A stretch of DNA of 64,000 nucleotides from Cycas panzhihuaensis. Its lineage: Eukaryota > Plantae > Cycadophyta. The stretch covers positions 172,801,741 to 172,865,740 of the forward strand of contig CM041465.1 in the NCBI GenBank assembly GCA_023213395.1, given 5' to 3'. A program made the position numbers and the translations under genes. Shown piece after piece: positions 5,885 to 54,800 of the stretch (the first letter of the stretch is position 1; each line of letters opens with the position of its first letter). Below the pieces are notes generated by a model. That model was given only the letters and a program-made list of their open reading frames with translations, was not told where the DNA came from and ran no database searches.

Positions 5885-5979
<95 letters not shown>

Positions 5980-6000
5980 TGTATGTATGTATGTATGTAT
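5862..6000. repeat. Compound microsatellite (AG)n, (AT)33, (GTAT)12
   Basis: Directly visible: AG run ~5862-5877, AT run 5887-5952, GTAT run 5953-6000. Confidence 0.98.
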
Positions 6001-6419
6001 GAGGCAAGTTTTGAAGTAAATTTTCTTTCAAAATACATTATACATTCCAAAAGGAATGATATCGAGAACACACAAAATAAAGGAATGCAGAGTGTAATTT
6101 TACACTATATGTTCCTGTGAGAATTTGAATGGGAATACATATGAAGATTAAAGGCAAATACCTAACTCAAATTTTCTTATTTCAATAAGAGCAAGTTCTA
6201 AAGTGATCAACATAACCATGTAAAAGTATTTTAAGCAAATTAGTAAGGAGTAAAGCATCTAAATTAACATACATTCTAAAGGCAAACACATGAAATATAT
6301 GTCAATTCTTTTTGCTAATAAACCCTTATTTTTATGTTTTATCTCATTAGTGTTAGATATTGCTTATTATTTTTTCCACTCTATCTAATATAAGAATCAT
6401 AGAATACTAGGTAAATTAT

Positions 6420-8585: not shown

Positions 8586-8918
8586 TGTTAAGAATAATAT
8601 TTACTTCAAGTATTTAGTATTTATAAAGGTGTATTTTCTCACATATGTATGAGCATGTAACCCCCATTCTTAAGTATTATGACTCCCATGTACTTTATAA
8701 CTCCTTTCTATTTTTATATGTTCTCTTTGTGATCGTGAGTATTGATCATATATAAATTTATATCATAGTTATTTATATTTATTAATGATAATTAAAAATT
8801 CATTCAAGTTTTGACCATATACTTGCATACTTTGTAATTGATGTAGTTGTCTCTATGTTTGTGTTATTACTCTATCAAAATTATGATAGTGTATGTTTTT
8901 TAATTCAAGTTTCTAACA
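8586..8918 (+). repeat. 5' LTR of Copia-1
   Basis: TGTTA...TAACA, followed by a PBS-like sequence; aligns to 26386-26713 at roughly three-quarters identity by eye. Confidence 0.9.
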
Positions 8919-16192: not shown

Positions 16193-16548
16193 TGTTTGGG
16201 AATATAAAATCATACACAAATGTTCCCATCTACAGGATCTTTAACCATACACAATAAGCAAACAAGAGTACACACAGAAAATAGATGCATAGTACATAAG
16301 ATTTATGTGGGAAAACCCTTTTGGGAAAAAACCCATCACAAAAGGATCCTTGATGGATCACATTGATTATTGCATTATTGCTTGATACATTGAATACACA
16401 AGAGCTCAAGGCTTTTATACTATTCCAAGAGGTGTCACCTGATTAGGGTTGTGACCCTTCAAATAAGTTTCACCTTTTTGCTTAATCACCTTAGTTAAAC
16501 CACATTAATATAAACATAGTGGCTTAATAATTAACTACCACGTTAACA
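16193..16548 (-). repeat. 3' LTR of Copia-2
   Basis: Direct repeat of 22112-22467; adjacent to the PPT (ccccccctca on +). Confidence 0.95.
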
Positions 16549-19500: not shown

Positions 19501-22111
19501 CATAGAGCTCTACCTTGAAGCCCTGTTTGCAGATTTCCTGGGTTGAAAGAAGGTTTAACTACATCTGGTTACATAGCATACGCTGATAAACTTACCTCTT
19601 GCATGGATACTTTGTCGATACCTTCCACTGGTAAGACGCAAGCATCTCTAAGGATAATTTCAACACCACTTTGATTTTTTGTCATTGTATCAAAGTTTTA
19701 CATCTGGTAAGAGATATGCTTCTATGCTCCAGAGTAATCTCTTTGATCTGACTCAGTTGATAAGGTTTATGCTTTGATATAATGAGCAATAATACTCTTC
19801 CCTTTATTATCTTGGTTAACTTTGTGCTTGTCACAACACTTGAACCAATAGTTCTTTTTGTGGTGACCATCCTTCTTGTAGTAATTGCATTTTCAATTAA
19901 ACTTTTTCTTATCTTATGAACTTTCTCCTGATCTCTATATGATCTTCTCCTCCTTAGTAGCCTCCTTCCTCTGAGTTTTCATGGCTAGGGCCTGACTTGA
20001 ATCAAAACCTCCAAGCATTCCATGATGTTTAAGCTTGGAATCCTCCACTAGAATTAGGTTTTTAAGCTCGTTAAATATTTCTGCTTCTATCACTTTGTCT
20101 ATACCATAAATGGTTTGGAAAGTAACAAACGTAGCTGACAGCTTTGACATGATTATTGCAAATAATAACGTATCATCAACTGAGTTCTGCTTAAGTTCTT
20201 CTAACTTATTCTTCAAGTCTATTATTTTATTAAAGTAGGAGTTGATGTTATTATTATCTTCCACATCTAAATTGACCAACTCCAACATTAGGACAAGATG
20301 TCTATTTATCTTCTTCTTTTTAAATGTTTTACACAACTTCATCTAAATTTTGTCTAGTTTGTCTAGATTGTAAACCAAAGCTCTCTGGTCCAGCATCATG
20401 ATAGTTTCAATAGTCCCATGGCCATAAATTTCTTCTCTTTGAGATGAACACACTCTTTATGGTCTAGTGGAATCACGCCCACCTTCGTCTTAGTGATATC
20501 CCATAGTTGATTCACCATCAAAATTAGCTCCATATTAGTCTTCCACTTGCTAAAATTATTACTGTTGAAGATAACCTTAGGTATAATGTGCTCTATCTAG
20601 AGAAATATACTTCAATATGAGTTAAACAACACTAAAACAAATATCTTTAGGACAAAAATGCACCCTTATGTCCTCCTTTAACTCAATGGTGCACAGTGGA
20701 GGGTGCCAAACACTGACTATACATGCGTTGAGTGAGTCACTGATTGTTTTCCTTTACAAATAGCCAACAAATGCCTTTGAATACCCTTAGAAAAGTAAAA
20801 AAAATGATCCTTAAGGCACTTAAAATGGTGCTCCAAGTACAAAGGATGGCTCCACAAGGTAAAAATACACGATCTCTAAGTCAAAACATTGAAAATTATT
20901 CTCGATTCATGCTTAAAATAGTTCACAAGGGCACAAATACAATATATTATGATAAAATATGATGAACCAATGGTATAAGGGTCCTTTTATAATGTTATAT
21001 TATAAGGAGAATATGCCAAAGGGTATATTCCAAAGTTTACGACTTTTTATTAAAGATCTGCCTCTCTTCAGTTAACGTACATGTCAAAAATTAATAAAGA
21101 TGTGCCAAATATATTAAAGATATACTAAGGTCTCCATTAAGGGTAATATATATCTTATAATATCTCAAAAAACTCTTCTACTTCATTCTTTATAATATGC
21201 AGCAATCATATAGGGATGAGACAACTGTGGACGTGCACCTCTTTAAATGGACTAGATGTAGGTCTCCACACATAGAACAACTAGCAAGCAGCCCAAATAA
21301 GAGTAAACGCACTCCAAGAATGCTCGATTAATGTAAAAAGTACCTAACCAACATAAACTAGTGTCCAACCAATCTAAATAGCACCCAGTCAATATAAATT
21401 CAGCCTAACCATCATTTAAGGGAGCCAAAACTACCTCTACATGGGCCAACTAACTTTCAAACATGCTTAGACATGTAAATAAGTACCTGGCCAACCTCTA
21501 TATGGTTGTTCTAGGCTCTATTTATGCACATGGGTCTCTAATACTCTAAAAAATACATAGACATTTAATAAAACACCCTTCTACTGCTGTAAATTTCAAT
21601 CCAACACTTATAGTCAGACATAAAACTGTTAATACTAGCTTCAATCATGTCCATAGGTGCTACACAAAGGTTTGGCAATAAGCAGTACATAAAAATAGCC
21701 TTGTTTTATCAAAATTTTTGATATTTTAATAGGAAGTATAAAGGACTTACTTGTACACAGACGTGGCTATCCTTAAAGTCACCGAATTACCATCAGTACG
21801 TGCTCTGCTAGCTTAAATCTTTACAACAAATCTTTAATCAACTTCGGATGGCCCCTAACGAGGTAACTCATACCATAAACGCAGTCTTCATGCCTAATTA
21901 TTAACTCTAATAAACCCTTATTCTCCATTGAATAGTTATTTTCACTGCTTCAACCACTACTGATTCACTTGTACTTGCTTCTGCATGTTGCTAGAGTTGA
22001 TGGACCCTTAAGACAAGTTTGGGTTTGACAGCTTCACCCGGCAACCAATGATCTCACTGCTTCGCTCAATGTCAGGCTTCAACTATGTAGGAACCTATGA
22101 CTCTGATACCA

Positions 22112-29700: not shown

Positions 29701-30100
29701 CCAAGGGAATGGAGAGTGAGTGAAGATAGTGGTATATATAGAAGCACTCCATCAAGGATCAACATCAATATCATAGAGGGCCCTAGGGTTCATGTAAGGA
29801 GGGCTAAGGTACCATTTTTGCATCATTCATTGTATTTAAAATTTCTATTTTTTTCTATTAAAAACCTTCAATGAAGAAAGAACCATACAAATTCTCCTTT
29901 GATCATAATAAAGAATTATTATTATTTTTATATAAGAGAGCGATGATGGTTAGAGTTTGAATTTATACATCATTTGTACAATTGTATAACTCTTTTCAAA
30001 ACTATACAAATTTCTCCTAAACCACATTAACACCTTAAGAATATACTAATAATGGTATAGTTAAATTTTTATTTTTCTATCAAGTTTTCTTGGTGGAAAA

Positions 30101-33100
30101 TGTTAGAGTGGTATTATAACCACTTACCAATTAATGTAAATGGGTGGATATATTGAGCAAATAATATTGATGTAATATTATGATATTATGGGCTGATAGT
30201 TGTAAATTTGAATGCTAATATTTGAGGTACTTATGAATTATAAATATAGATAAAAGTCTATTGTATTGTAATATCCAGATTTATAAAAAATATAATAATA
30301 TATTTTTATGGTGAAAGGGTTCCCACGTTAAATTTGTTTATCTTATGTGCTTGTTTTATACATAAACGATTCTGTCATCCTATTTATATATTTGGTATTT
30401 TTAAACATGGTATCAAAGTACCACGAGGTACACAAGTAGACAAATATTAGATGGATTATTTGATCATTGGTTGCAAAGTCATGTTGGCTCTCCCTTTGAG
30501 GATTGACTTATTCAACAATCGAAAGAACAACCACAGTGATATAATGATTAAATACAGATCCTAGTGTCTTTTGTTTTCTATTTTGTAGGGATTCTATAGT
30601 CTTTATAGGTGTATGAATGAGTAGAATATGTTGTTTTAATTTATACAAGTGCTAGTGCCCTTGTTCTCAAATTTGTAACCCATAACTACTCTCTTGTTGA
30701 TCATTATGTTAGTTTTAAGTATATTAAAAGTGTTAAATCTAATTATTTAAAGTGCCACTAAGTTATAATGAGACATTTACTAATTTATATGCAACTGGCT
30801 CATGATTATAGAGGTTGGGAGACAACACATATGTACACAATTGTATTAATGTTACGTAGAAAATTGTGTTCATTATATTATACAAGTTTGCTATGACAAT
30901 CATACGCTAGATACCATAGGTATGAGATTACAGACTCAAGAAAATGTGACTGATTTATAGACTTAGAAGAGATGCAATGTACGTACTTACAAATTACAAC
31001 CGTGCGTGAAATAGTTACAGTCGCAAAGAAGGATTTGTAGGTGCTGTTTGAGTTTATAAATCACCATGGATATTTACACTGCATGTTGGATGTGCAGTGC
31101 CATAAAATCCATGTGAAGAGATGCAAAATTTGTAGCTAAGTCACTAGAAATATACTCAGGCTGTCATAATAATTACAGTAATATTAAGGTACTTTGATCA
31201 CATTTGATTAAATAATGTCACTGCGTTGAATATATACAACCGCCATGAATGAGATACTTCATCGCCATCGTAGGCATTTTATTTATTGGCCCATTCCATT
31301 ATTTAAATTATTCATTTGTTGGGCATTGAATAAATAAAGTTGCGTTTCAAAAATTAAACTTTGATCGCCGTTGCATTTTCCTATGATATATTAAGTTGAA
31401 TTCGATTAATATATTCGGTTGCCAATTAATATTTGCTATTGTCGTATCAATAAAGTTTCTCACATGATAAATATTTACCATTGATATATTTTGTCGTTTG
31501 TTGATTTATTTTAATTGCATAATACTATAGTTTGAATGCCATATATCAAGTCACTTAATTATCAAAGTTTTTTTTTTATTATTTTCATCATTTGCCCTTT
31601 GATTGAAGGATTTATTGATGGGCATACATCAAGAGTCACATTCATAATTGTTGTGTTTAAATAAGATTAAGATCAATGTGGATTTTAATATAATGATTGG
31701 TTAACATCATCATTCTTGATTACCATTCATTGTTGAGTATGATATAATGCTTTGATCAAGTGAGCATATTGTTGTGATTATCAAAATGGTGTAAATATAT
31801 AGAAAATGTTTTATTTTGATGTGATGATAATATGTAGTTAATGACGATATTTATGATATGATGGTGAAGTGAGTGCTTTAGACACACTCTATTGATGACT
31901 GTTTAGTGATATGAGTCAACGGTATACTCTTTTTTGTTTGTATTTATATGAGAGAGTGTGTTGGGTGAGTTAGCTATCAATGTTAGTGTATTTTCATTGA
32001 TTGATACAAGGGAAAGAATGGGTGAATTTTATGGAGATACTAAGTTGCAAGATGAGTAAAACTATGGTGTGGTAATTGGTCATTACATATTTATTCAAAG
32101 GTGTGGCTTATTTAATAAAAAGTAGTGTGTTTATTCAATTATATCAGTGTTTTTACATCAGATGTATGAGTGAAAGTGGTTTAGAATTGTTATTTATTGG
32201 CTTGTTTATATAAGTGGTTATTAATTTATGGTGGAACATTATACTTTAGGTGGTTGAATTTAAGTTAGCATGAGGCATATAACCTGTTAGATGTTAGTTC
32301 AATGTGTGTGCATATCTGAACAAGTCAGATGTATATTCAATTATATATTTGTAATAAAATTGAAGTGTGAATGGAAAGGTATATGACTAGATTGCTTTAA
32401 AATTCAGTTCTCCCTTGATCATGGTATAAAATGGGAATTGGCTATCTCGTGTACCCCAGTAAGATTATGTTACAGATGTATAATGGTACCATGATGTAGA
32501 TGTGGAGGTGCTTGATGTAGGGTAAGATTTTACCTCCCATATTTTTAGGTAGAAGTTGTTGTGATAATTGTTTTATGAGGTCTCTATTAGGACTATTTGT
32601 GGCATATCCTTTGAATTGTGTTAGATCAATTAGAAGCCTTCAATTATGTATTTGAGGTGCATTGAAATGCACACATCTTAGACAAAGATTGCAACAGTAA
32701 GATCATAAGAGTTCAAAGTATATTTATATGGGATTTGTGTTTAAAACAAAGCTTACAAATAGTATAATCTACATGGGAATTACATTGTGATTAGTCTAGA
32801 TGTCAATTTGAAAAGTTATTAACGTATCATACTAGGGTGTCACATGAATATAGGTTTTATCCTTTATTTCTTCCATTTTTCAAGCTATTGTTCAGTAGGT
32901 GTAGAGGTTTGTGTACCTAACATTGTGTTTGAGATGGAAGTAGGACCTAGTGGAAGTGATGATGAGGATTTATTGTATGAAGAAGCTTGGACTTCAACCT
33001 TGTGTTCTATTATGGACTAGGAGGACCATTGAGAACTCTAGTAAGACGGTTGAAGACTTAGAAGATGATTGAAGAATGAGGATCAACATGCCAGTCAGAC

Positions 33101-34087
33101 TCATGATAGCCATTAACGATTCTAACGAGTGGAGATTCATAATGGAGAGCTACTATATAGGAGGAGTATTATGTGGGATTTAGGTCGCTTACCTCCCTTA
33201 AAGAACTTGGTTAATTTGTAAGTTGGAAAAGCTTATTACACAAAATTTCATGTTGAAAGAAGGATTCAATTATAAGAAGACATTTACACTAATCTTTATG
33301 ATGTTATTAGTCTAATTGGTCCTTACTTTAGTAGCTACAAATAGGTGGGAGTCATATCATGTCAGTATTCCTTAATAAAGACTTGAAGAAGAGATCCTCT
33401 TAGTTTAGTGAAGGAACATGTTGAATATTATGGACTAAGTATTGGTGCTAGAGAGAGTTATATGGTTGCAAGGACTATTAGAGTATTTCTAAAGAATCAC
33501 GTATATATGAGACATATCACCATTACGTCTGAGAGTAGATCAGATTAGGGAAGATGTAGGTTGAGTTTTGTCTAAGTGAAGATCAACTTGAGGACATGTT
33601 CACCAAGCTCTTATTAAAGATCGTTTCATCAATGTTTATGCATATTTAGGATTTAACGAGGTTATCCTTGAGGGGGGATCTATCAACAAGGATAAAGAGA
33701 GATAGACAAATCCTTCGGAAGGTTTTAAGATCTCACATTTATATTAAGAGGGGATATTAAAGTGGTATTATAACCACTTATGGACTAATATAAATAAGTG
33801 GATATATTATGCAGATAATATTGATGTAATATTATGATATTATGGGCCAATGGATGTAAACTTGAATGTTGATATTTGAGGCACTTATGATCTATAAATA
33901 TAGATCAAAGTCCATTATATTATAACATTTAGATTTGTCAAAAATGTGATAATATATTTTTATAGTGGGTTTTTCCTGAAAAGGTTCTCACATTAAATCT
34001 GTTTGTCGCACATACTTATTTTATTCGAGTCCTCTATATACATAAATAATTTTATCATCTTATTTGCCTATTTGATGTTTCCTAATA
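30101..34087 (+). mobile_element. Copia-3: ~4-kb internally deleted, non-autonomous Copia derivative
   Basis: LTRs 30101-30407 and 33755-34087; TSD gaaaa/gaaaa; PBS tggtatcaaag at 30408; PPT aagagggga at 33746-33754. Only patches of INT ('DHGIKWELAISCTP'), RT ('EGFNYKKTF') and RH ('DMFTK') remain. Confidence 0.9.
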
Positions 34088-36650: not shown

Positions 36651-37590
36651 AAAATCTTCTATCTGTGGGACAGATGATGGAACAAGACTATAAGGTTGTA
36701 TTTGATAATAGTGATTGCACTATTAAGGACAAAAAGAAGAACAAAGCTATTATTACAAAAGAAAAAAAGACTAAAGATAGATTTTTCAAGTTAGTTATAA
36801 CTCCTTCAGACAACTATGTATTGAAGACAACAATCAAGATAGATAACAACATGTGGTATAAAAGGTTTAGCCACCCAAATTATGGAAGTTTAGCCCTTAT
36901 GAAGAGAATGAATATGGTTGAAGCACTACCATAAATTGAAGCTGACAATGATATTTGTGAGGGTTGCCTTTTAGGCAAGCAATATAGAGAAAGTTTTTTT
37001 GATGGAAGCTATAGAGTAAAGAACCACTTCAATTAATCTACACAGATCTTTATGGTCTAATGGATGTCCCATCTCTAGTTGGTGCAAAGTATTTTCTCAC
37101 CTTCATTGATGATTATACAAGAAAGACATGGGTCTATTTTCTAAAATTCAAGCAAGATGCATTTCAATACCTTGTAGACTTCAAAATCTTTGTGAAGAAG
37201 CAAAGTGGACACAAGATACTTTCCCTAAGATCAGATAATAAGGGAGAGTTTATTTCTAATGAATTTAATACTTATTATATATACTATGGTATTATAAGGT
37301 AATACAAAAACCCCTATACTCAACAACAAAATGAGATTGTTGAACGAAAAAATCATACCATAGTTGAAATAGCTAGGTGCATGCTTAAATATAAGAAATT
37401 TGGACACGAATTTTAGGTAGAAGTTGTCCATACTATAGTTTACCTCCTAAAGAGGTGTACCACCAAGGCCCTTAGGTGGATGACACCAGAAAAAACATAG
37501 ATAAATTATAAATGTAGCATTCATCACGTGAGAATCTTTAGATACCTAGCCTATGTCGATGTTCCAGAACAAAAATAGATTAAACTTGAT

Positions 37591-38057
37591 TATTAGGAAT
37601 ATTAATGTTAGCTTTATATTATTGTTAGTTTTATGTTAATATTATCTTTTGATCACATGTGTAAATATAAATTTAAGTGATGTAAAGTTCTTTTTATATA
37701 AGCTAATGTTAATTATTAATTATTATATGAAGGTCATTGAAATGTGTAACTGCCCATTTTAACGAATCTTTCATTCTTTAAATAGCCTCTTATAGATTCT
37801 AGGAATTGGTTCCAGGAATCTAAGAGGCTGTCATAAGCCTATTTTGAAGGCTGGTTTCCGTATGTAGAGGGTATTCTTATCAAAGTTTTATGTAAGGTTT
37901 CCAAGTCAATAAATTTTAAACTTAGAGAGGTGTTTTCTCTTCCCCAGAAGGGGTTTTCCACCTGCCACATCATGTGTACATGTGCAATGCCAAATTTTCA
38001 CCTGTGTATGTTTGTTTATTTGATCCTGTGATATTGTACATACTACCTATCTTTACA
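37591..38057 (+). repeat. 5' LTR of Copia-6
   Basis: Direct repeat of 44505-44968; begins TA, ends CA, followed by the PBS. Confidence 0.96.
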
Positions 38058-38069
38058 TGGTATTAGAGT
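38058..38069 (+). promoter_or_regulatory. tRNA-iMet primer-binding site of Copia-6 (decayed TGGTATCAGAGC), overlapping the end of the FY fragment
   Basis: tggtattagagt directly after the LTR terminal CA; two CAG-context C>T changes from consensus. Confidence 0.9.
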
Positions 38070-38616
38070 AGGAGTAGAATTTTAAGTCTGTTCTAGAGAA
38101 ACTCAAGTCTTAGACAGCTTCCCTATGAGCTGACTTGTTTGCTTTGATATTATTCATATTGGTTTGCTAGTACTTGATAGAGCCACCATCATCACTAATG
38201 ACCATCCAATTTTTATTATGGCTCCATACTATGGACTTGATTGCCTGATCATGAGCCTAAAGAATCATTTCAAAATTGAATGACTCCCCATTCCAAAGAG
38301 TGAACTCTCCACTCTACAAGCCTGTGATTAGACGCTGTCTTGTTGGCATCCACAAGACTTTGTTAATGGAGCAATGATTTGTATTCATAGATGCATGCAC
38401 AAATTTAGCAACAAAGCTTGTTAATGGATTATCTGGATAAGCACTTGATCGCAACATATCTACAACTACAACTGGTGTAAGGTGCAAAATTGTACTATCC
38501 CTTACATCTCGTTGCCACATCCAAATCTGCATGTACCAGATAACTGTGCGTGTATAATCAACTGTTCGAAGATGTATATGCTTTCTGACCCTTCTAGCTG
38601 AGATCCCATCTCCATG
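38062..38616 (-). pseudogene. FY: Captured, uninterrupted fragment of FY (WDR33/Pfs2 orthologue, WD40 polyadenylation factor), N-terminal region and first WD40 repeats
   Basis: 185 codons with no frameshift and 4 decay-type stops: [40 protein letters not shown]...[18 protein letters not shown]...[100 protein letters not shown]. This matches plant FY as I recall it ([66 protein letters not shown]). Confidence 0.95.
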
Positions 38617-39112
38617 TTCTCGAGCCTTCAAGGAATCCATACGATGTAGGCTGATTCCAAGAACTTCCTGTTGCCCTTCGAACTTGCTATCACCGATGAT
38701 GATAATCTTTGCGGTGATTTGTACATTCGAGTGAGCAGAGCTCCTGACCAGTCTTTTGAGAACTGATGTATCATAGTGGGTAGCAGTGCGATGGTGTTCG
38801 TACAAAACTTGGCAGTGCGAAGGTGTTCCTCCCAGTGGCCTATTGATGCTTGCTCCCCACCGTGGCCCGCTGTCAAAGAACTGATCCTGCAACATTGAGA
38901 CATCTCCATAACTGACATGGATCCTCACCTCAACAAGCCGTCTCTCCTACAAACCATACGAAGATCGACCTGCAACAAACCTTCGTCGCCATGGAGAAGC
39001 GTAACATGTAGGGTTTCTCTCTTTCCCTCCTCTCGGATCCCAAATTACATCTTAAATCAATTTTCTTTTATAAAAATAATAATTCCATCTGGTCCACGTC
39101 TCCCTAACCCCC

Positions 39113-39116
<4 letters not shown>

Positions 39117-39176
<60 letters not shown>
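39117..39176. repeat. (AT)30 microsatellite inside the Copia-6 leader
   Basis: Directly visible. Confidence 0.98.
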
Positions 39177-39178
<2 letters not shown>

Positions 39179-41176
39179 CAAATCAAACCTAATCAACCTT
39201 AGGTTAATTAAAATTAACCTTCCCCTTATTATATTTGATTTATAAATCAACATTATCCCCTTTATTACTTTTATTATTACAATATCCCCCCCTTATATTT
39301 TATTATTTACCCCTATTTATTATATTTATTATTACATTAGCACCCCCCCCCCCCCTACATTTTATTATTAAAATTAACCCTCCCTAACTACATTTTTAAT
39401 GTTAAAATTAACCCCCTCTATTACACTTTAATATTAAAAATAGTGCCCTCCCTATTACATTTATAAATTAACAAAATACCCCCTCATTGCTTTAGTGTAT
39501 TAATATCTTTTTTAATTAAACCTTCATTTTTAATCAATAAAATCTAGCTATTACCCCCCCATTAAATATTTGGATATTAAACCCCTTTCCACACTTAATT
39601 TATAGATTTTAATTATGCCATTTAACTTTTTGATTCACAATAAATAAAATCAATAAAATATTTTTTTTTTAAATCAAATTAATATATCTTTAAATAAAAC
39701 TACATATATTTTTTTTTGCATTTTAACTCATTATTATTTTTCTAAAATTGTGGAAGATCTATAATAATCTTTACAAACTATTATTTGTTATAAAACTCGT
39801 TAATTATTAACAGTTAGTCAAAAGTTTTTTTTAATAACTTATTCATATCTGTTGTCTTCTTAAAATAATCAAAAGGGAATCTAAATACTCTTAATTATTA
39901 GTTTGTAAAGTTTTTTTTTTAAGTCTTTAAATAAACACTTAGCCTTTTTTACTTGTGATTGAATAAATAATTTATTCTTTAACAACAATAAGGGGGACTA
40001 TTAACATATTTTTTCTCAGAAAAGGGGAATATTTAATTCTTTTGCTCTAGGGGAAGGGTATCCAAATTTAATAACTATGGTTTTCAGTTTCTTATCATTC
40101 GATTAAACATGTTACTCTGATGTTTAGTAATTTCAATATAACTATTATCACTTATACTTATTCATCTAAATTTTCTAAATCTTTTGACTCAAACAGACTT
40201 CTAATCAGCATTTATAATTCCTAATATGGCACTAATACCAGGGACAATCACTTGCGTTATGATTCCAGTTCTAACTGGCTCAAACTATGCTGACTGGAGG
40301 AATTACATTTCCCATCAGCTTAAACAATAGAAGATATGGTGATATGTAATAGGTGAATTCAAAAACCAAAAGACGCAACTTTAGAAAGCTATATGGTATA
40401 TCTGATGAACTCTGATTCATCTCTAGGCCCCATCCTATTGTCACTCTCACCATAAATCAATCGACAGTTCTATGATACAAATGATCTAGCCACTGTCTGG
40501 AATACTCTTAAGGAAAAATATGATAAGGTCGACACACAACAATTGGCTGTCCTAGAACAACAATTGTATAACCTTAATTATGATGATTTTTTTAAAGTCG
40601 AAGACTTTTTATCCAAAATTTAACTAATTAATAAAGATCTAAACAACTGTATTAAAACTATAATTAAAGTAGGTGATGTAGAACAAATAGTCATACATGC
40701 TAAAGATGACGATACGCTCGTATATCTTGCGATAAACAAACTACTAAAATATTTTAATCTTTTCAAGACTGTTAGACAACAAGCTGGTATTCCTCTGATA
40801 ACTTATAATCAGTTGACAAACCAACTAATTGAACATCAAACGATATTAATTCAAATAGGAAAATTGAAAGATCCTTCTCAGGCTTTCTTTTCTAAATCAA
40901 AGCCTCAAAATAAAACCAAACATCAGAACAACTTTAATAGTAATCCAAAATTCAAAAAACCTCATAAAGGTCCACCTCCTAGTTTTCAAAATAATACTAA
41001 GTATTTTGGTCCACCTAAATATCAGAATACTTCCAAACAGTCTTTTTCAAATCAGAACTTTGTTAATCCTTCTCAGAGCATTAGTTGTGCCTACTGCCAT
41101 AAAAAAGACCCCACTATTGACGTTTGCAGAAGTATAATAACTTCAGAAGCCTGGAAAGCTTTTAAGGGATTGCAAC

Positions 41177-41226
41177 CCTGACCACAATCCTGACCACAAT
41201 CCTGACCACAAACTCGACCACAATCT
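41177..41226 (+). repeat. 12-bp tandem repeat (cctgaccacaat) x4 between gag and protease of Copia-6
   Basis: Directly visible; encodes (R/*)PQS units. Confidence 0.9.
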
Positions 41227-44200
41227 CATAATCACTCTTTAACGGTAATAACTTCTATATTTATTGCTCCATCTAATCAATCACCTCAATGGATCCTTGA
41301 CTCTGGTGCTTCCTATCACATGATAAGACGCTAGAAAAATTTATCTACTTATCAATATGATACTAACTCTGAAGAAGAGATTTCTTTTGGAAGTAGATCC
41401 TAACTCAAAGTAAAAGGATAAGGTGATGTCACTTTGAAAGATGATTCAATCAAGGATGTCTTCTACATGCCAGATTTGTTACCAAACCTTTTCTCTGTCT
41501 ACCAAATCTACTAGAAAGACCTTGTTGTTGAATTCTGAAAAGATAAATTTATTATTAAAAAACCATTAAATAAATTCAAACCTATTTCCTCTAGACATGT
41601 TGATCATAAAATAAGTCTCTATAGCCTAACTAGTTTATAAAATACCAAAACAAAGTCCTTTAGTGCCTTCATAGTCAAATTTGATCCAATCAGTAAACTA
41701 TGGCATGCACGATTTAACCATACTAGTTATGGAAAACTTTAGTACCTAAAAAGACATGACATGGTTCATGGTCTTCCACCTTTAAATACTGTTTATGGTA
41801 TCTACGAAGCCTGCGTAATAGGTAAGCAACACATAGATCCTTTTTCACATCAAACTCAATTCAGAGTGAAAGTTCCACTTGAACTTGTTCACTCTGATAT
41901 ATGTGGACCATTCCATGTAACTTCATATTCTAGCAGTCGTTATTTTGTCACGTTTATTGATGATTTTTCGAGAAAATATTGGGTGTACACACTTAAGACT
42001 CGTAATCAAGTGTTTGACATCTTCACTGAATTCAAAACACTTGTAAAAAATTAATCAAAATCGAAAATAAAAAAATTTAGATCTAATAATGGCAAATAAT
42101 ATCTAAGTGATAAATTCACTTTCTTTTGTAAGAAGCACAAAATTTAATTTCAGTATTCTGTTGCCTAGAATCCCCAGTAAAATGGTGTTGCTAAATGCAA
42201 AAACCGTACTCTTGTTGAAATGACTCGATGTATGCTACATATAAAGAGTCTTGACTTAAAGTTGTGGGCAGAAGCAATTTCCTGTTCCAACTATCTTTTA
42301 AACCGTTTACCTAGTAAATTTTTACAAAATGTTACTCTAGAACAAAAGTGGTCTAGACGAAAACCCTCAATTAAACATCTGAGACTTTTTAGAAGTATTG
42401 TGTGGGGACATATTTCCAAAGAAAAACATAAGAAACTCGATCCTAAAAGTCAAAAATATATCTTCATTGGATACAACGAAAAGAACAAAGCTTACAGACT
42501 TTTGGATCCAGTTACACACAAAATATCAATTTTACGTGATGTAATATTTGATGAAGAAGGATCCTCTTCAACTTCTACTTATGCAGAACTTCCTATTGAG
42601 AATCTATTAATCAATACCTATTTGGTTGACTCATCTGGAAAATAAATTAACCTTGAGACTATAGAATCATTACCCACACAAGTTCAGAATTAGACTCTAT
42701 CTGAACCAACCGTAATAGAGCCTTCTTCTCAAGCTAGCTCCTCATCTCAACCTATGACTACAGAAACAATCATAAACAAACAACCTGTATGGGTAAAGAA
42801 AACACTTTTTGACACTAGATCTAATGTAGGTAATCTTGTAGATACTAGGAGAACATATGCTCAAAAATTACATTCTAACTATATATTAATGGTTAAAATA
42901 ATGGCCAATAATGATCCTAAAACTTTTAAATAAGTTAGCAAAAATCTTGTATGGCAGGAAGCCATGCAAGTTGAATTTGATACTTTAAACAAGAATTTAA
43001 CTTGGGATCTTATTCCATCTTCACCAGGGAAAAATATAGTTGATTATAAATGGGTTTATCGAACTAAATACAATTCAACATGCGCAGTTGAAAAGCATAA
43101 AGCTCGCCTAGTTGTGAAAGGATTTCTCAAATCGATGGGATAGATTATAATGAAACCTTTGTCCCTATTGCAAAGATGAATACCATTAAAACTATTATTT
43201 CTCTAGCAACTAAATTCAACTGGGAAATCCATCAAATGGATGTCAAAAGCACGTTCCTAAATGGTGATCTTTAAGAAGAAATCTACATGTCTCAACCGCT
43301 TAGTTTTATTGATAACCTTAATTTAGTTTGTAAACTAAAAAAATCCATTTATGGATTAAAGCAAGCTCCTCGAGCTTGTACATAAAAGTAAATAATTATC
43401 TTACTCGAAACAGATACACTAGATATATCAGTGATCTAAATCTCTATTTTAAACGTGAAAACAAGAATCTTACTATATTAATCCTGTATGTCGATGATAT
43501 CATCATTACATGATCTTTAAAGAATAACATTCATAAACTAAAAATAATCTTAATGAATAAATTTGAAATGACCAATCTAAGTTTTCTACACTATTTTCTC
43601 GAATTACAAATTTACCAACACGATTAAAAAATAACCATATCTCAACCAAAATATATTTTAGACCTAATCAAATGGTTTAACATGGAAAATACTAAACTGG
43701 TTTCTAATCCTTTACAATCAGGAGTAAAATTATCTACTGATTATTCTGCACCCTTGTGTGATCCAACTTTATATAGGCAGCTTATTGGCAGCCTTATTTA
43801 TTTAACACATACCTGACCTGATATATCCTATGCTATTGCTTTATGTTCGTGTTATATGCAAAAACTACATGAATCACACTGGAAAGCTGCTAAACGTATT
43901 CTTCGATATCTTCAAAATACTATTTTTTATAGTCTAACTTATAATTCTTGCAGTAAACCTCTAACCTTAATAGGGTATATTGATTCAGATTGGGTAGGTG
44001 ACTCAAATGACTGTAAGTCCACATCAGGTTATGTATTTTTTATAGATTCCTCACCTATCATATGGTCTAGTAAAAAATGTAAGTCTTAGCTCTATCAACA
44101 ACTGAAGCTAAATATCGAGCACTTGTTGAAGTAAGCAAAGAAGCACTTTGGATCAAATCTCTCTTAAATAAAATTTGTCTGTTTCCTAACTCTTTTATAT

Positions 44201-44504
44201 AAATTAAAGTTGATAATCAAGGTGCGATTACTATTGCTACAAATCCAATTGCTCATTATAGAACTAAACACATAGAATTGTATCAGTATTTTATTCATAA
44301 TCTTGTTACTGATAATATTATTCATTTATCTTATTGTCCTACAGATCTACATGTTGTTGATATTCTTATCAAGTCATTGACTGAAGTCAAGTTTAAACCT
44401 GCGAGATTTGTTAAAGATAAAAGAAGTCTCCATCAAAGGGGGATCAATATGATGAAGACCTTCTTTATCTTCTATATTGTATAAAAGCTAACATTAAAGG
44501 GGGA

Positions 44505-44968
44505 TATTAGGAATATTAATATTAGCTTTATATTATTGTTAGTTTTATGTTAATGCTATTTTTTAATCACATATATAAATATAAATTTAAGTGATGTAAA
44601 GTTTTTTTTTATATAAGCTAATGTTAATTATTAATTATTATGTGAAGGTCGTTGAAATGCGCAACTGCTGATTTCAGCGAACCTCTCATTCTTCAAATAG
44701 CCTCTCATAGATTCTAGGAATTGGTTCCATGAATCTAGGAGGCTATCATAAGCCTATTTTGAAGGCTGGTTTCCGTATGTAGAGGGTATTCTTATCAAAG
44801 TTTTATGTAAGGTTTCCAAGTCAATAAATTTTAAACTTAGAGAGGTGGTTTTTCTTCTCCAAAAGGGGTTTTCCACCTGCCACATCATGTGTACATGTGC
44901 ATTATCAAATTTTCACTTATGTATGTTTATTTGATCCTGTGATATTGTACATGCTACCTATTTTTACA
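44505..44968 (+). repeat. 3' LTR of Copia-6
   Basis: Follows the PPT; followed by TSD ttgat. Confidence 0.96.
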
Positions 44969-47900
44969 TTGATGATAAGAGCACTAAGTGCATATTTATT
45001 GGGTATAGTGATGTGTCAAAATCATATAAGGTGTATGACCTAAATGAAAGAAAGGTTATGGTTAGTAGAGATATTGTATTTAAAGAATATGACTACTATC
45101 AATTAGATTATGTCTAAGATAAAGGCAAGAACATTATGATTAACTTTGATTCATCTCCCAAGTTCACATATGTGCCACCTAGACAATATTCAAGGTAAAA
45201 TGTTGGTGTATCAAGGCCAAGTGATGAGGGAACCTCTACTCAACCTCAAAGGTTTCTTAAACAGATTTAAAGAAGCCATGACTTGGATAACATATTAGAT
45301 AATAACTTTGACAAGATATTTACTCATTCACATTGAGTTAACTTCGCCCTTATAAGCTAAGTAATGGAAGTCCATGAGCCTCATACTTTTGAAGAGGCAG
45401 ATATTCATGATGAATAGAGATAAGCTATGGGAGATGAATATGATTCTATAGTGAAAAATAATACATGGGAACTCATTCATCTTCCTCCAAATAAAACATC
45501 CATTGGAACCAAATGGGTCTATAAGACCAAGTTTAGATCTTATAGATCTATTGTCAAATATAAAGCTAGACTAGTTGCCAATGGATATATATAAATAGAG
45601 GTATAGATTATAATGAAACCTTTGTTCCTATTGCTCGAATAGAGATGGTTTGTATGATATTGAGTCTAATAACTTAAAAAGATTAGGATGTTAATCAAAT
45701 AGACATTAAAAGCACTTTTCTTAACGGCTACATTAAAGAAGAAATATATGTTCAATAACCTAGAAAATAAAGTGTATAAACTTAAAAAGGCACTTTATGG
45801 TTTGAAACAAGCACCTAGAGCATGGTACTCTAGGATGGATAAATATTTCAGAGATTAAGGATTTGAGAGAACTCAATCGGATCTAAATTTGTATATCAAA
45901 ATCAAAACAGATTCCATATTAATTGTGAGACTTTATATTGATGGCTTGGTCTATATAGGAAATAACTCTCATCTTTCTAAAAGATTCAAGGATGATATGT
46001 ATAAAGAGTTTAAAATGATAGATTTGGGATTAATGCATTACTTCTTAGGATTAGATGTTTGGCAATATGATGATGGTATTTTTATTTCTCAAAGGAAATA
46101 TACTTTGGACTTACTCCAAAAGTTCAAGATAAATGACTGCAAGGCCTTAACCACACCAGTAGAAGTCAAAATCAAACTATCCAAACTTGATGACTCTACT
46201 CCAATTGATCCTATATTATATAGACAATTGATTAGAAGTCAAATATACTTGACATCAACATGACCTGATATCATGCATGCGGTTAGTATTGTATCAAGAT
46301 TTATGCAATATCCTAAATCTACACATTCGCAAGTGGCTAAATATATTGTAAGGTATCTAAAGGGTACGACAGACTAGGGGATACATTACAAACCTTTCTT
46401 AAATTTTAGGTTGATTGGATATAGATTTAGATTGGGCAGGTGATGTTGATGATAGAAAGTCTACTTCTGGATATACCTTTAGTTTAGGCTCAATAGTTAT
46501 AGCATGGAGTACCAAAAAGTAGAATACTGTTTCCTTATCTATAGTTGAAGCAGAATATAAGGCAGCAGTATCAGGTGTATGCGAAACAGTTTAGCTATGT
46601 TGACTACTTCATGATATCTAATTGGAATAGGATAGTCCTATAAAAATATGGTGTGATAATGAGAGAACTATTCAAATGACACGTAATCTAGTCTTTTATA
46701 GAAGAACTAAACACATTGAGATGCAACATCATTTCATTCAAGAAGTTGTCCAAGTAGGAGAAATAGAGTTAGTTTATTACAACACGGAAGATCAGACAAC
46801 AAACATATTTGCAAAGGTACTTAGAAAAGTTAAGTTCTATAAATTCATAGATAAACTTAGAGTTACACAAAATAAACATTATGAGAGAGAATGTTAGCAC
46901 ATATAACATTCATTTTGTTAAAAGTGTGCAATTGGACTTTGGGAATCCATGGGGCCACCTACAACCATCTATAGTTGACTTAAGAAGGGGTAAGTATTAT
47001 TTTATTATTTTTATTTGAAAAAAAATGGTCGATGGAAAACTCCCTCCCAACGTCCCAACTATATATTTGTGGTGAATTATTTATCGATATTATTTAACAC
47101 CACTAACTATTAGAAATTTGTTAATATTTTTCATCAATATGGATTGATACTATTATACTTTGTCCCCGGTTTGTACTTAAAGTTCATCTATATCATTGAA
47201 CTGCCTACATATGTTTAGTGAGAGAGAGAGGTTAAGACGGTGCCCAGGGCTTTATCACAAATCATCAGATAAATCATATAGATATCTGATTTAGTATTAG
47301 AAGGTTTTGTAAACTCTTTAGTTATGTATCGTCAAAAAATTTATTGTATGAACAAGTAAACAATTCCTAAGGGGAAATATTTTAAAGGTTATGATATTTA
47401 TGCCAATTCCCTCTTGATGATTCCATTGGTCTTTTTATGTGAGTTGGTAAAGTAATAAATGAACATATACCTACATATAATGTTAATCCTCTTTAGAGTA
47501 TGATTAAAAGTGGAGTTTATTCTAATTACCTTCTAAATTGCCTTGTGCTTTTCTAAAACTTTGAAGAGAAAATATAATCATAAAAACAATGTATTAACAT
47601 AATTCTAAACCATGCAAAGAATAAATATCATAAACAAACTAAGCACACAACAAAGAACACCAAGAGATTCAGGTCTAAGCATTGACCTTTTATTAATTTG
47701 AGCAATAGTTAAAGAATTACAGAGATGAAAACCCCAACTATTCTCATCGACTCATTAAAGACTCATCCAACATTTTATATGTGCCATTATATAAGAATAT
47801 ATAGATATAATTTTATAAGACACCACCTTACAATTTTACAGTATAATAGGCATAAATGACAAAGGGACTCAGATGTAATGCCTATATTCATGTAACACTT

Positions 47901-48879: not shown

Positions 48880-51800
48880 TAAGATAATACTTATGACTTA
48901 GCTTATTTGATCTTTCACTTTTCTTTAGCAATGTGCATGTAGGTTGTACATCTAAAAGTTCTAAGGTGTGGGACTGTAGGCTTCTATCTTGACCAAGCCT
49001 CCTCAGGTGTTATATTTTTGATAACTAAAATTGGGCTCTTGTTTGTGAGGTAAGCCACTATAGTAATAGCTTTAGCTTGAAATGAGTCAGCAAGGTTTGC
49101 AACATTAACCATTGTTATTCAAAATATTTAATTCATTCACTCAACAATACCATTTTTTTAAAGAGTACTAGGAATTAAGAACTGACGCTTGATGCCATGT
49201 TCTTTACAAAAATTGGTGAATTAATTTGATATATATTCACCTCCATTATTAGTACAAAGAATCTTGATTACAGTGTTGACTTCATTTTATCTTTAGATTT
49301 AAATTCCTTGAATTTCTTAAAGGCTTCAAATTTGTTCTTTAGAAAGTAGGCTCAAATTTTTCGATAATAATCATCAATGAATGCGATGAAATATAAATTG
49401 TTATTAAGAGAAGGTTTATACAAAGTTCCATAAATATCTAAGCGAATTAAGTCTAATGGTTTAGTTGATTACCAAGCTTTTTTAAAATTAAATGGTTGTC
49501 TGTATTATTTTCTAATAATACAAGCTACATAGAAACTATTATGCTATTTGATATTGGGCAGCCCATGCACCATCTAAAGTCTAAACATGAGGTTGAAACT
49601 GCATATTTAAATGACCAAAGCATTGATGCCATAACTAATCATTGGTATACTTATGAGAAGGTTTCTCCTTAATATGTGAAAATTTAGCTTATATATGAGA
49701 AGATTTAACTTGCATGAAAATAGGTGGGTCTTCTATAACAAGTTACTTTCCATTATCTAACAGAGTAGGATGCACAATGACACTTAGATTATGATTTTAT
49801 GTAGAGGAAAGTGGAATGCCATCAAGCTTGTATAGACTATTAGCATCATGTCTTGTAGCCACTACTTATCCAGTTAAGTAATTTGAAATTGTATAAGTTC
49901 CCTTGCTAAAGAGTACATTAAAGTTCTGCTTATCAATTTAACTAACAGAAAGTAGATTTTGCTTCATACCAAGTATATATAAAACATTGATGATATGGTG
50001 ACATATGTTCAAATCACTTAACACTATGGGAGCTTTCCTAATCTTAGCCACATCATATGTAACATCATCACCAAATATTATTGTCTATGCCTAAATGTGT
50101 TTGTTATTTTTTAAAAGTTTTTTAGTGCATGTCAAATGATGAGTAGCACTAGAATTTATCAACTAGGAGTTGTCTGAATGATTTGAAAACAGAGTGGCAT
50201 ATAATATGTTTTAGGTATTGGCCACTATTTCCTGGTTACAGGGAATGGGTATGGACATGTCGACTTAGGTAAAAGTAGGTATGCTTCTTCCTTTTCGCAT
50301 TTATTTGTTTCTTTGGAAAGGTAGATAGAAGCATTGCCTCATTGCACGATTGACTGCCTCATTTGAGTGATCACCTTGCATCTATTGCTTGATCATGTTA
50401 CTTGTCATATTTTCAACCTATGACGACCCTATGGGACCTACCTTTCTGCAAAGTAGGCATCTCCATGGCGCTCTACAACTCTCTGCGTCACCTCCACGTC
50501 GCCTCAAGCCTCACTCAACTTGTGTGATCTGCTTACACCGTAATCTTACATTCTTTCATAGCATTTCTGGGAACCCTAACTCTTGATGTCTCATTTGGTC
50601 TAGACCACATGTCACCTGGACTATCCCTAGCCGCCTGGACAAGAGGGTCGGCCCCTCCTAGGCCTATCACATCTCCTTCTAGGACTCCCAGAACCTTGGT
50701 CATTGCTATTTAGTATTCTGGTCTCGCACCATTGTAAACTAAGCGGTACCGTGAAGTTTACCGCGGTACTGCAAAGTTTACTGCAGTGTGACTATTGCAC
50801 TTTATTTTTTTAATCCGCTGTGGTAATTCTTGTTTTTTTCGCGAAATTGCCACGTGGATAAGTGACCAACTCAGCCCTACCCGAACCCTAATCGCTCAAT
50901 TAGGGTTAGGATGGGTATATATCCCGAAAAATACTTCATTTCACATCTCTTGGCTCTTAAACAATACGTTCAACTGCTGTAATTTTGCTCTCTTCCTCCT
51001 CTCTTTCACAGGTATGCCTGCAACACTGCATTTTCTGCCATTCTAGCCTAAGATCCGCCTCCAACAGCTCTGTCACGTGGCAGGAAACTCTCCTCCAAGC
51101 ATTTCCAAGCAAGATCTCCACGTTTCTCCTTTAGTTTCGCCCAGCAAGTGTCTTCCACAGCTCTACTTTGGGAAATACCCTACAAACCTTACAAGACCTG
51201 CACTCTTCCGCTATTTGCAGGGGTAGGTCTGCCCTTAACTCAGCCCAACAGGTACCCCTTACTTTGTTTTTTTGTTTTAGCACATGTTTACTCCATTAGA
51301 GCTTGTTCAAAAGTACATTTTCTTCCCTTTCTTGTCTTTTTGCTGTAAAAGGGATTGCTCTTTCTTGCGTTTAGCTTCAAAGACCTCAATCTCCTTCCCA
51401 TTCTCTACTGGTTTTTCTCAAGAAAGCTGTGGGAGAGGGTCAACAAGGACTGGGTGAAGGGAGTAAGGTGGGATCCGTCCCATTTAGACCTACTCCCCAA
51501 GGGAAAACCCCTTCCCATCCTTCCTCTCTTGCGCCTGTGCTTTTCTTGAGCTAACTAGGAGTGGGTGGAATCCAAGCTTGCGCAGGATATCAGCGTATGC
51601 AGCCCTTGTTACACTGGTTCCAGGCATGCACGCTCTCATTTTGGGCCTTCTTTATGCCCCTAACATTGTTCAGCACCCATTCAGACCTTTGGCTAAGCTT
51701 GCATGGTGATTCACTGCCCATGACGACTCCGCTACTTAGGCATCTCTCCTAGGTCCCGTAACATTCATTCTCATGCTTGTTCGCTGCTCATAGGCTGTCA

Positions 51801-54800
51801 TATACCCTTCATCCTGTTGCATTCTAAGGCTGCGTGAAGATCCATTTGTGGAGGGTTTTGCCATCCTAAGGCTAGCCTCCCTTTCTCGCTTGGTATGCGT
51901 TGTCTTTCTTTTGAGGAGAGCAGAATTGCTTTTAGTAGTAGTTCCACTAATTTAAAATACAAAACTTTAGCATTTATATTATATCTTTGTCTATATAATA
52001 TCTTGCATCTTGGCAGCCCCTTTTTGGAAGAGAAAACCCCTTTGTGGTTGCAAGTTTGCTGCAACACTTGTGAAAGGAAAGAATGCACAACCCCAGCTAA
52101 GTCTTCACCCTTCTTTCCTCTTCCGTCTTTTCGCTTCTTTGCATGATTTTAGCCTTCTTTGCTTTCCTGCTTCGCTTTGTCCTTTGTACGGGGAAGGTAA
52201 GGGAGCCCCTATTTCATTTTTGCTCCAACTTTAGTTACACACCAACTAAGGACGGGAGGGCATACGTTGCATGCAAGTGAGATTCTTCGTCAACCGCTCC
52301 ACTTCTCAGGTACGCATCATCTCTCTCCCTTCACTTCCCACTCTTTTGTGCTCTTATCAAACATATATTATATTTGTATAATAAGCCACATAAAAGTAAA
52401 AAGGGTAATAAACCAACTACTTGTATTTGCCTTATATATGCGTGTTGCGTACTTGTTTTTGTAGAAGAGGGGCATAGTAGGAACTACACTCCTCCCCCCA
52501 TTTTCTTCTACCTAAACTGAAAGCACCCTTAGTTACATTTCACTTAGCTTACATGCTTGAATGCATACGAAACACTTGTTTCCCTTTCTTTCCTCTTTGT
52601 CTTTTATCATTGAAAAGAAAAGAGAGAGAGGGAGAGAAGCTCTTAGTCACCCTTTTTGCCATTCCTTTCCTTGGTTAGATTTGCCTTAGGCTAATTGGCC
52701 TAAGGGAAGCCTGTCCACACTTGTCTTAGGCCCTCTGCCTATTGTACCCAGACTCATGTTCCTTCGCCATAGGAACCCCTCCTTTGAGGGTCTCTCCTCC
52801 TCCCTTCCGGCCATCCAAGGGTGGGAGAACCTTACCATTTGGGATTATCTGAGACACCCTTGTGTGTATCTCTCCTCTCGGAACTGAAAGCAAAAGTTAC
52901 TCCGAGGAAGTTAGGCACCATTCGCGGATCCCGAACTCGCGCTCCGGCGCATGGACGCCCTATGTGGTATTCTCTTCTGCTTATAGGACCCCATCTATAC
53001 CCCATCATTGGTTGTTGAACATCTCAATTCCTACTAAGCGTAGTGACCATCCCGCAGACGCGATTCCAACCACATGGCCTCTTTGTTGTAAATTTCTATT
53101 GTAGTTCTAATTTTAATTTCTTAGTTGATTTTGGTTCCTTTGTTGCCTATTTTGTTGACCACGTATGTTGTTGCGACATTAGTTTTGACCTTGATTTTAG
53201 TCTCCTTGTTGTTTAAGGTTTATTTGTAAAAGCTACAGATTAGATTGCCTCTTTCTATAATTGGGGATAACATGTCCAAGTTTGTCATAATAGAAGTAAG
53301 TAATATTCTATTTTCTCTACTATTTTTTGGTCTATTGTGGTGATTGATTCAAGTTTAACGAACCAAACTATTAGGCGAGAGACTGCTGAATAGGTTGTTT
53401 CCTCCCTCAATTTCTAGTTATACATGTGGAAGCAGTGTTATAAAAAAATATTGTTCCTTGTCAATTTAAGATACCTTCATCCTTCAACAATAGTCCTTCT
53501 AGGGTATGAAAGTCTACGGTAGCAAAGTCATTTGATAAATAAAATATAAAGCTATTATACATAGAAGGAAGAACACTGACAACATTAGAAACAAAGTCAT
53601 TTTCAGAAGGAGCTCCTTCAAGAGTAGTAAGCTAGTTCTTGATGGCTTTAACTTTAGTCGTGTGAAGGTATGGAGCCAATAAAAAATATGGAATATAAGC
53701 ATGCTTTTAGTATGATTACTCTTGAGTCATCCGTTTACTCATAAAGTGAATATTTGATGTCTCATGCCTCATGAGATGCATATATTGTTTTAATGTTTTG
53801 GTCTACATTGTCTTCTATAATTAAGTATATGAAGGATAGAGCAAGATTATCTTTGGCTCTAAGAATAGTAAAGGCAACATGGTCTAGAGAGATTATGTTA
53901 TTTAGATTGGTTGGTCAGGTGTGGGAGCAGGTTTAGGTATGTTACCTAATATATAGGTTCAAAACTCATTCATGATCAAAAGGTGTTTGACTTATTTCTT
54001 TTAAGCAAAAAAATTATTACTCCCAAATAATTTAATTATGTTTGAAATAAGCATTTTTACTACCATTGTGTATTATCTACCTAGTGGTTTATTAAGCTAA
54101 AATACTAAGTTTTAATATCTCTAAAGAAGCCCTCAATTGTTATTCTGTTTAGTGGTACTTGCCAATAGATAACAGTTCATGGAGTTTATATATATTGGTA
54201 CGTAAGCAAGTTAAGCTTGATATACCTCGCTATGTGAGTGTAGAAGGCTTGATTGTCCCTTTAACCCTATGAATCCACTTATGCCAAATTTATCCTAAAT
54301 AAAAGATCTAACAAATGATTGAAACCAAGACAATAACCCCTTCAAATATTAGCTTGGTCTATGAATACCAAAAGAAATGGATTTCATACCGCAATTCGTC
54401 ATTTGATACACCTGATAGCAAGTTGTCCTTTGACTTATTTATTTAGATGAATATAATTTATGTATGTGAGAGTGATTACTTCAAGGGTTCCAACTGTTCC
54501 TGTTACATGATTGGTAGTTTTGTTATTTAATTCAAAATTATCTTGCTTAATATTTCATATTTAAATTTCTATTAAATAGTATTGTTTAAGGTAAAAAGAT
54601 AAAATTTTAATGAATTTCATAAAGGAGATAACTTAAAGCAACAAAACTAAATGAATAAATGACAAAGAAAAGGTGAAGAGTGCAAAGCAAGGAAGGGGTC
54701 ATTATTGAAAAGTAGAAAGTAGGCCTTTCCTGAATAAGAAACACATTTGCATTAACAATGTACCATGCACCATTAGCTAAAAATGAGTGAAAAATATATG

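Follow-up and report, generated by a model that had tools for sequence, protein, structure and literature searches.

How does an antisense piece of a host gene come to start at an LTR retrotransposon's primer binding site (PBS), sharing bases with it? The question is raised by a copy of part of FY (WDR33) that lies behind the 5′ LTR of an element in the window, by which we mean the whole 64-kb stretch of DNA analyzed here, AT-rich plant DNA built of nested LTR retrotransposons. The answer depends on the anatomy of the element, on the exact bases at the junction, on how much of the FY mRNA was copied, and on which step of reverse transcription could have brought the two together.

The host element and the LTR/PBS/FY junction

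The element is a decayed, once complete Ty1/Copia retrotransposon that was inserted as a single unit, as follows from its pair of LTRs, its target-site duplication (TSD), its polypurine tract, and its gag-pol region in Copia order. The surrounding DNA is the integrase of an outer Copia element, with rve in the left flank and the integrase C terminus in the right flank. The features, in window coordinates, are the following.

37586..37590, no strand: left target-site duplication TTGAT; the identical 5-mer stands at 44969-44973, directly beyond the LTR ends
37591..38057, plus strand: 5′ LTR, starting TATTAGG and ending TTTACA; aligns with 44505-44968
38058..38069, plus strand: PBS for tRNA-iMet, 12 nt with two C>T decays, by match to the consensus
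38062..38069, no strand: 3′ end of the PBS and complement of the FY codons (C)-S-D, an 8-nt overlap, from the tblastn end and the codon table
38062..38616, minus strand: conserved N-terminal part of FY/WDR33 with the first WD40 blades, free of introns, by protein and DNA homology
38617..38998, minus strand: probable FY variable N terminus and 5′ UTR, in the same frame and with weak homology; distal limit 38998 to about 39116
39117..39176, no strand: (TA)30 microsatellite in the leader
39177..40225, plus strand: AT-rich leader, with a 34-nt degenerate minisatellite (39355-39485)
40226..44495, plus strand: decayed gag-pol, integrase before reverse transcriptase, by Pfam domains; gag-like start at 40226
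41761-42051, 42220-42642, and 42964-43140, plus strand: rve, SH3_retrovirus, and RVT_2, respectively, in Copia domain order
44496..44504, plus strand: polypurine tract AAAGGGGGA, adjoining the 3′ LTR on its upstream side
44505..44968, plus strand: 3′ LTR, ending ...TTTTTACA, then the TSD
44969..44973, no strand: right target-site duplication TTGAT, a perfect 5-bp match to the left copy

The two LTRs are 92.6% identical (K2P 0.079) and differ by 30 transitions versus 4 transversions, so that C>T decay is the norm in this element. Both LTRs end in CA and both start in TA, against the expected TG...CA. When the leader (39000-40300) was compared with the rest of the window, the TA microsatellite was the sole similarity, and a scan of 38900-40260 for more host-coding pieces showed none. 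Rfam and tRNA scans of the 64-kb window gave no matches.

At the junction, the plus strand of 38052-38086 reads LTR...TTTACA, then TGGTATTAGAGT, then AGGAGTAGAATTTTAAG, and a spacer is absent on both sides of the PBS. The end of the 5′ LTR is placed at 38057 because the 3′ LTR has the same ...TTTTTACA end, followed by the TSD TTGAT. Compared with the plant tRNA-iMet PBS consensus TGGTATCAGAGC (PMC3852365, PMC4974523), TGGTATTAGAGT matches at 10 of 12 positions, both mismatches being C>T. Complementarity to the tRNA ends after 12 nt in all five Copia PBS of the window. The lack of a spacer between PBS and insert, noted in a preliminary description of this DNA, is thus borne out: the CA of the LTR is followed by the 12-nt PBS, and the base after that opens the minus-strand FY frame, which is unmistakable.

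Read on the minus strand in the FY frame, the junction is ...D L K F Y S Y S N T M *. With plant FY proteins as queries, tblastn aligns without gaps from 38616 to 38062, setting the terminal FYSYSN against FCSCSD, and the alignment extends 8 nt into the PBS (38062-38069). Eighteen plant FY proteins show the motif F-C-S-C-S-D-D without a single change. Three bases differ from those expected (38064, 38069, and 38075), each with T for C in a CAG context, and on the FY strand the differences (Cys>Tyr, Cys>Tyr, and Asp>Asn) are each a single G>A step. Two further claims of the preliminary description therefore hold. It reverted three CAG>TAG decays, and these all fall on invariant residues and follow the dominant transition decay; and it saw the same 8 nt serve both as PBS and as anti-FY sequence, which agrees with a tblastn alignment that ends inside the PBS. 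With T fixed at 38070, an in-frame continuation of the PBS complement as (C)-S-D has a probability of about 1/16 x 6/64 x 2/64 = 1.8e-4; the chance of the 8-nt overlap at the nucleotide level is 1.5e-5, with two of the eight bases reconstructed by reverting C>T decay.

The sister copies available for comparison are contigs from public runs carrying three species labels. Summed read-contig depth is very high over the LTR, 70 to 280 over the PBS-proximal part of FY, and 5 to 50 over the distal part. Two contigs bridge LTR, PBS, and FY with more than 31 nt on each side: X1 record 3 (86% identity) and X2 record 11 (85%, gap-free). Judged by their sequences, these are diverged paralogues, not alleles. 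The preliminary description had raised the case of sister copies whose FY homology stops short of the PBS; these diverged copies instead align in colinear order through the junction, X2 record 11 with no gap at all, and the junction therefore predates amplification, the chimera having transposed after the capture. The intact TSD and the two bridging contigs likewise indicate that the chimera was transposition-competent. An insert-free relative of the element was not recovered among the public-run contigs.

These observations bear on whether the adjacency of PBS and FY is a matter of chance, with FY captured elsewhere in the leader, then moved to the PBS by a deletion, and an overlap that is a coincidence flattered by the reverted bases. 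The age of the element (LTR K2P 0.079), the presence of indels, and the reconstruction of 2/8 overlap bases would all suit such a history. We nevertheless regard it as improbable: it would have to accommodate an invariant C-S-D that runs in frame through the PBS complement (about 1.8e-4), reverted bases that are C>T in CAG in three cases out of three, in an element where this is the dominant decay, and the same junction in diverged sister copies.

Identity, splicing, and extent of the FY fragment

By homology, the insert is an antisense, spliced copy of mRNA from the host gene FY (WDR33), probably of its first ~0.95 kb, part of the 5′ UTR included. Human WDR33 structures (PDB) match it with an E value of 6e-12, and it shows 72% amino acid identity to residues 21-205 of Magnolia sinica FY (185 residues, ungapped); at the DNA level, it matches the plant FY transcript L002 over 547 nt without gaps, with 79% of the bases identical. 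Four in-frame stops (38316, 38259, 38169, and 38112) lie within it. The FY piece is a dead fragment, covering approximately residues 1-205 of about 700, and not a functional gene.

In a genomic plant FY contig (L080), the same residues are split into at least six exons (at least five introns), none of which interrupts the insert. The breakpoint at the PBS falls within an exon of that contig, the one for residues 192-226, and is therefore not a splice artefact. Beyond the conserved part, the FY frame stays open for ~100 more codons, up to an in-frame stop at 38949, and an S-Y-G-D near 38910 resembles the M-Y-G-D start of FY, for which the consensus start is MMYG. The assignment of 38617-38925 to the FY variable N terminus, and of 38926 to about 39000-39116 to the 5′ UTR, is weakly supported by these resemblances. 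On this reading, no second captured transcript is needed to account for the stretch. As to the distal limit, the match to the window breaks off at 38998 in one contig, and a second contig continues to 39084. The preliminary description had depicted an antisense mRNA insert running toward the mRNA 5′ end; the insert is antisense and intron-less, it runs that way and apparently reaches that end, and an origin in reverse transcription at the PBS fits.

LINE-made processed pseudogenes are marked by poly(A), a TSD of their own, and 5′ truncation. The insert resembles them in being an intron-less copy of an mRNA. However, neither poly(A)/poly(T) at the insert ends nor a TSD around the insert was seen, and it is the 3′ 60-70% of the mRNA that is absent while the 5′ part is retained, the reverse of LINE-type truncation. 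Such a pseudogene is one form of a DNA-level origin; another is a fragment of FY cDNA or of an FY retrocopy, joined by microhomology-mediated end joining at a break where PBS and leader of the integrated or an extrachromosomal element meet. Microhomology of 8 nt would be typical of alternative end joining as well, and nested insertions are common in the window, but within a leader of ~1.2-2.2 kb, a break at a random place would hit precisely the final base of the PBS with a chance of ~1e-3, even with the microhomology not yet counted. Taken together with the missing poly(A) and TSD and the reversed truncation, this leaves a DNA-level origin with only a small probability.

As proxies for the donor mRNA, we used a metagenome and metatranscriptome scan that yielded 80 WDR33/FY loci, about nine of them plant-type (FCSCSDD). 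Two of these, the natural transcripts L003 and L004, have the codons TGC TCC TGC TCT GAT at the site, exactly the state implied for the insert, and seven have synonymous alternatives (TCC/TCG, GAC, TGT). Since synonymous codons vary among plants in this way, the 8-nt identity of the donor can be deduced only from the decayed copy and from protein constraint. Across ~2.7 kb, L003 and L004 contain no 7-8-nt match to the 3′ 12-mer of tRNA-iMet other than the 8-mer at the C-S-D codons, so that the junction sits at the sole place that annealing predicts. When duplex energy was scanned along two FY transcripts, the junction site did not stand out. L004 also shows a possible extra ACCA match past a 3-nt bulge.

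It had further been suggested that FY mRNA mimics the 3′ end of tRNA-iMet. This is overstated, as the likeness amounts to 8 contiguous nt; a transcriptome of ~5e7 nt should hold several hundred copies of such an 8-mer, and FY is therefore not special. The extension of the tRNA match through AGG across a 1-nt gap, proposed at the same time, is real, but it is marginal (chance ~0.03-0.05) and has no bearing on a 12-nt primer.

Strong-stop DNA as the proposed primer on FY mRNA

In Ty1 and Ty3, which are primed by tRNA-iMet, plus-strand synthesis is described as stopping after 12 nt of the tRNA, a stop documented for these yeast elements and not for plant Copia, and the first strong-stop DNA as being displaced, with dead-end copies accumulating in the particles (PMC5371799, section 2.2, which cites Lauermann and Boeke 1997). 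In the initiator tRNAs of yeast and wheat germ, position 64, which is the 13th nt counted from the 3′ end, is occupied by a bulky, modified purine (work cited in PMC6269823), and this modification may be linked to the 12-nt stop.

The reading that we favor, and to which we assign somewhat better than an even chance, is that the final 8 nt of plus-strand strong-stop DNA annealed to FY mRNA and that the DNA was then lengthened as far as the 5′ end of the mRNA. The setting would be a reverse-transcription accident within a Copia virus-like particle, in which strong-stop DNA, made up of U3-R-U5 plus the copied final 12 nt of the tRNA-iMet primer, skips the second strand transfer or is displaced as a dead end. 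Its free DNA end ...ATCAGAGC-3′ would pair with GCUCUGAU in a co-packaged spliced FY mRNA, at the Cys-Ser-Asp codons within the first WD40 blades, and reverse transcriptase would copy the mRNA to its cap or nearby, giving LTR-PBS-antisense FY without a spacer. We infer both the strong-stop DNA as the 3′ end and the packaged mRNA as its template. As the insert is antisense, the plus DNA strand is the direct cDNA of the mRNA, and in this model it is run-off toward the cap that would account for the retention of the FY 5′ part up to the start region, with sequence upstream of it.

The chimeric plus strand would then have to rejoin the element downstream by some route. At the distal end of the insert we find no second PBS within 2 mismatches, as an end-to-end jump onto minus-strand DNA would have left, and no recognizable microhomology, which weighs against the model. 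One possible return would have the internal PBS of the chimera pair with the minus-strand 3′ end while the FY tail re-anneals downstream, and replication after integration could resolve the resulting heteroduplex. With its PBS, polypurine tract, LTRs, and gag-pol intact, the product went on to transpose and gave rise to a subfamily with the same junction. The model rests on a single event, which is a clean fossil example and not proof.

In the first of the two routes offered by the preliminary description, the mRNA itself is the primer. A broken FY mRNA ending ...GCUCUGAU-3′ would have bound the element RNA through the inner 8 nt of its PBS and primed the minus strand instead of tRNA-iMet, after which strong-stop synthesis would have copied this RNA primer to its 5′ end. 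The product, LTR-TGGT-8 nt-antisense FY, would be the same and would show the same 8-nt overlap, and an mRNA without a modified base to halt read-through would explain the copying to the 5′ end. On the other hand, the mRNA would need to be cut exactly after the 8-mer, in the middle of an exon, and 8 bp would have to outcompete the packaged tRNA primer. Nor would it account for the position of the boundary at the 12-nt limit of tRNA copying (PMC5371799). Of the earlier mechanism, an origin by reverse transcription at the PBS survives; a cleaved mRNA as primer, which would need a precise 3′ end and for which literature searches turned up no precedent, appears quite unlikely.

A shade less probable again is a minus-strand switch onto an antisense FY RNA (for instance, a copy of the spliced mRNA made by an RNA-dependent RNA polymerase) with plus-strand transfer to a PBS-like site of its cDNA, which involves known steps only (PMC5131818), would also put the junction at a PBS-like 8-mer, and could appeal to the action of RDR6 on plant elements and their RNAs (PMC7197481), but which requires the packaging of an antisense copy of a spliced mRNA, an RNA to which nothing here points, and two more coincidences, namely, a switch into antisense RNA and termination at a pseudo-PBS.

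Known captures and wider occurrence

LTR-mediated retroposition by yeast Ty1 was reportedly described by Derr in 1991 and by Schacherer in 2004. In animals, it proceeds by a minus-strand template switch onto mRNA, with a median microsimilarity of 6 bp (Tan et al. 2016, PMC5131818). The element described here is similar in that a spliced, partial host mRNA lies between both LTRs in a re-transposable chimera, and its fusion point probably has 8 nt of identity at the PBS side (the donor bases being deduced), versus a median of 6 bp (PMC5131818). In LTR-mediated retroposition, however, a sense retrocopy replaces the internal ORFs, whereas here the copy is antisense, anchored at the last PBS base, and accompanied by gag-pol; FY lies on the minus strand and the element on the plus strand, unlike the shared orientation that a minus-strand switch produces. 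Because the junction falls on the last tRNA-copied base of the PBS, with an antisense insert and an 8-nt overlap, it points to a step other than the minus-strand switch, namely, the misuse of strong-stop DNA as a primer on cellular mRNA. Microhomology-guided template-switch capture is well known; as far as literature searches show, the plus-strand, antisense variant is the new part, and these searches found no description of antisense PBS-anchored capture or of strong-stop extension on cellular mRNA.

Lauermann and Boeke are said to have described the plus-strand strong-stop DNA of Ty1/Ty3, in 1994 and 1997, as a by-product without further fate. The likeness of our element to the dead-end strong-stop DNA of Ty1 and Ty3 lies in the same primer, tRNA-iMet, and in the 12-nt stop, which is the boundary where FY starts (for the stop, PMC5371799). 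While strong-stop DNA figures in that literature as a by-product, we propose here its extension on a cellular mRNA and its inheritance.

If this were general, the rule would be an antisense insert that is anchored at the PBS, shares microhomology with its 3′ end, and extends as far as the 5′ end of the mRNA. It would explain antisense cargo in element leaders, give the "dead-end" strong-stop DNA of Ty elements a fate, and provide element-driven antisense RNA directed at host genes. FY is a polyadenylation factor tied to RNA-mediated silencing. It is conceivable, though we think it rather unlikely, that the process recurs, with free strong-stop DNA in this plant regularly priming on packaged host mRNAs that match the PBS 3′ end; elements would then carry a polarized "cargo slot" (PBS, antisense 5′ mRNA segments, gag), and their transcripts, with long antisense host RNA, here FY, could feed back on host gene expression. 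A Pfam search of 30 stop-free pieces from the leaders and internal regions of three other Copia elements in the window gave nothing credible, which is a weak test in decayed DNA.

Among plant elements, host gene capture by maize Bs1 and other LTR elements was reportedly described by Jin and Bennetzen in 1994 and by Elrouby and Bureau in 2001 and 2010. Plant elements carry fragments of host genes in the interval bounded by their LTRs and multiply them along with their own sequence (Baucom 2009, PMC2774510; Jiang and Ramachandran 2013, PMC3726574), as is the case for Bs1, for other plant captures, and for the FY fragment. Transduced genes in LTR elements, including those captured in plants, are usually in sense orientation (PMC7264820), in contrast to the antisense FY. 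Antisense coding-like sequence is a feature that our element shares with Grande (gene23), RIRE2, and Retand. Their antisense ORFs are located between pol and the 3′ LTR, lack a host homologue, and are conserved family-wide (PMC7264820), whereas the sequence described here stands ahead of gag, directly behind the PBS, can clearly be traced to host FY, and has decayed.

Contig coverage along the FY fragment

The FY fragment, an antisense, intron-less piece of host FY/WDR33 mRNA lying directly after the PBS of the focal Copia element, is unevenly covered by contigs assembled from public sequencing runs under three species labels. Summed contig depth over its PBS-proximal ~200 nt (38093-38275) is approximately 5 to 10 times that over the distal part (38400-39000), and 38111-38320 is missing from one contig. 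A short FY stub may be all that many members of the focal element's family carry. We also observe several distal end points. In contigs of ~85% identity from two species labels (X2 record 14 and X4 record 23), the match breaks off at 38799/38800, and in one contig (X1 record 8) it breaks off at 38998. A contig at 96% identity, belonging to the third species label, continues through to 39084. These end points may represent sister subfamilies with differing distal ends, or alternatively the native FY gene.

LTRs of the focal element

Within 37910-37989, a core of ~60 nt in the LTR reaches a summed contig depth of 88,000-128,000 in runs of the three species labels, the remainder of the focal LTR being covered at 1,000-20,000 in the same runs. 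Loose contig ends are concentrated around this core, at 37926/37927 and at 37986-37989. The core looks like a hyper-abundant module common to many LTR families, or to another repeat. Both LTRs start with TA instead of the canonical TG (37591 and 44505), and the TG-to-TA change therefore predates the insertion of this focal copy.

The leader and its inverted PBS-like motif

Immediately 3' of the gag ATG (40226), the + strand reads GCACTAATACCA at 40229-40240. Reverse-complemented, this stretch gives a PBS-like 12-mer that agrees with the focal element's own PBS at 10/12 positions, 2-mismatch matches of this kind being expected by chance ~3.6 times per window. The entire 2.17-kb leader, the stretch from PBS to gag, thus sits between an inverted PBS-like pair. 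Two tandem repeats lie in this leader at 39117-39485: a microsatellite, (TA)30, without interruptions, and a degenerate 34-nt minisatellite containing C-runs. A second long TA array is located at 5886-6004. Long PBS-to-gag leaders (~1.5-1.7 kb) were also found in two other Copia elements (20540-22099 and 54000-55681), and no coding signal was detected in either leader.

Other regions of the window

A GC-rich patch at 50001-54000 (0.40-0.44 versus ~0.30 in the rest of the window) gave no Rfam match, and its ORFs overlap on both strands. Finally, 30100-33967 is delimited by a short LTR pair, 84% identical and 3.65 kb apart, with a tRNA-iMet PBS at 30408. No gag-pol is recognisable between these LTRs, and the element is probably non-autonomous.
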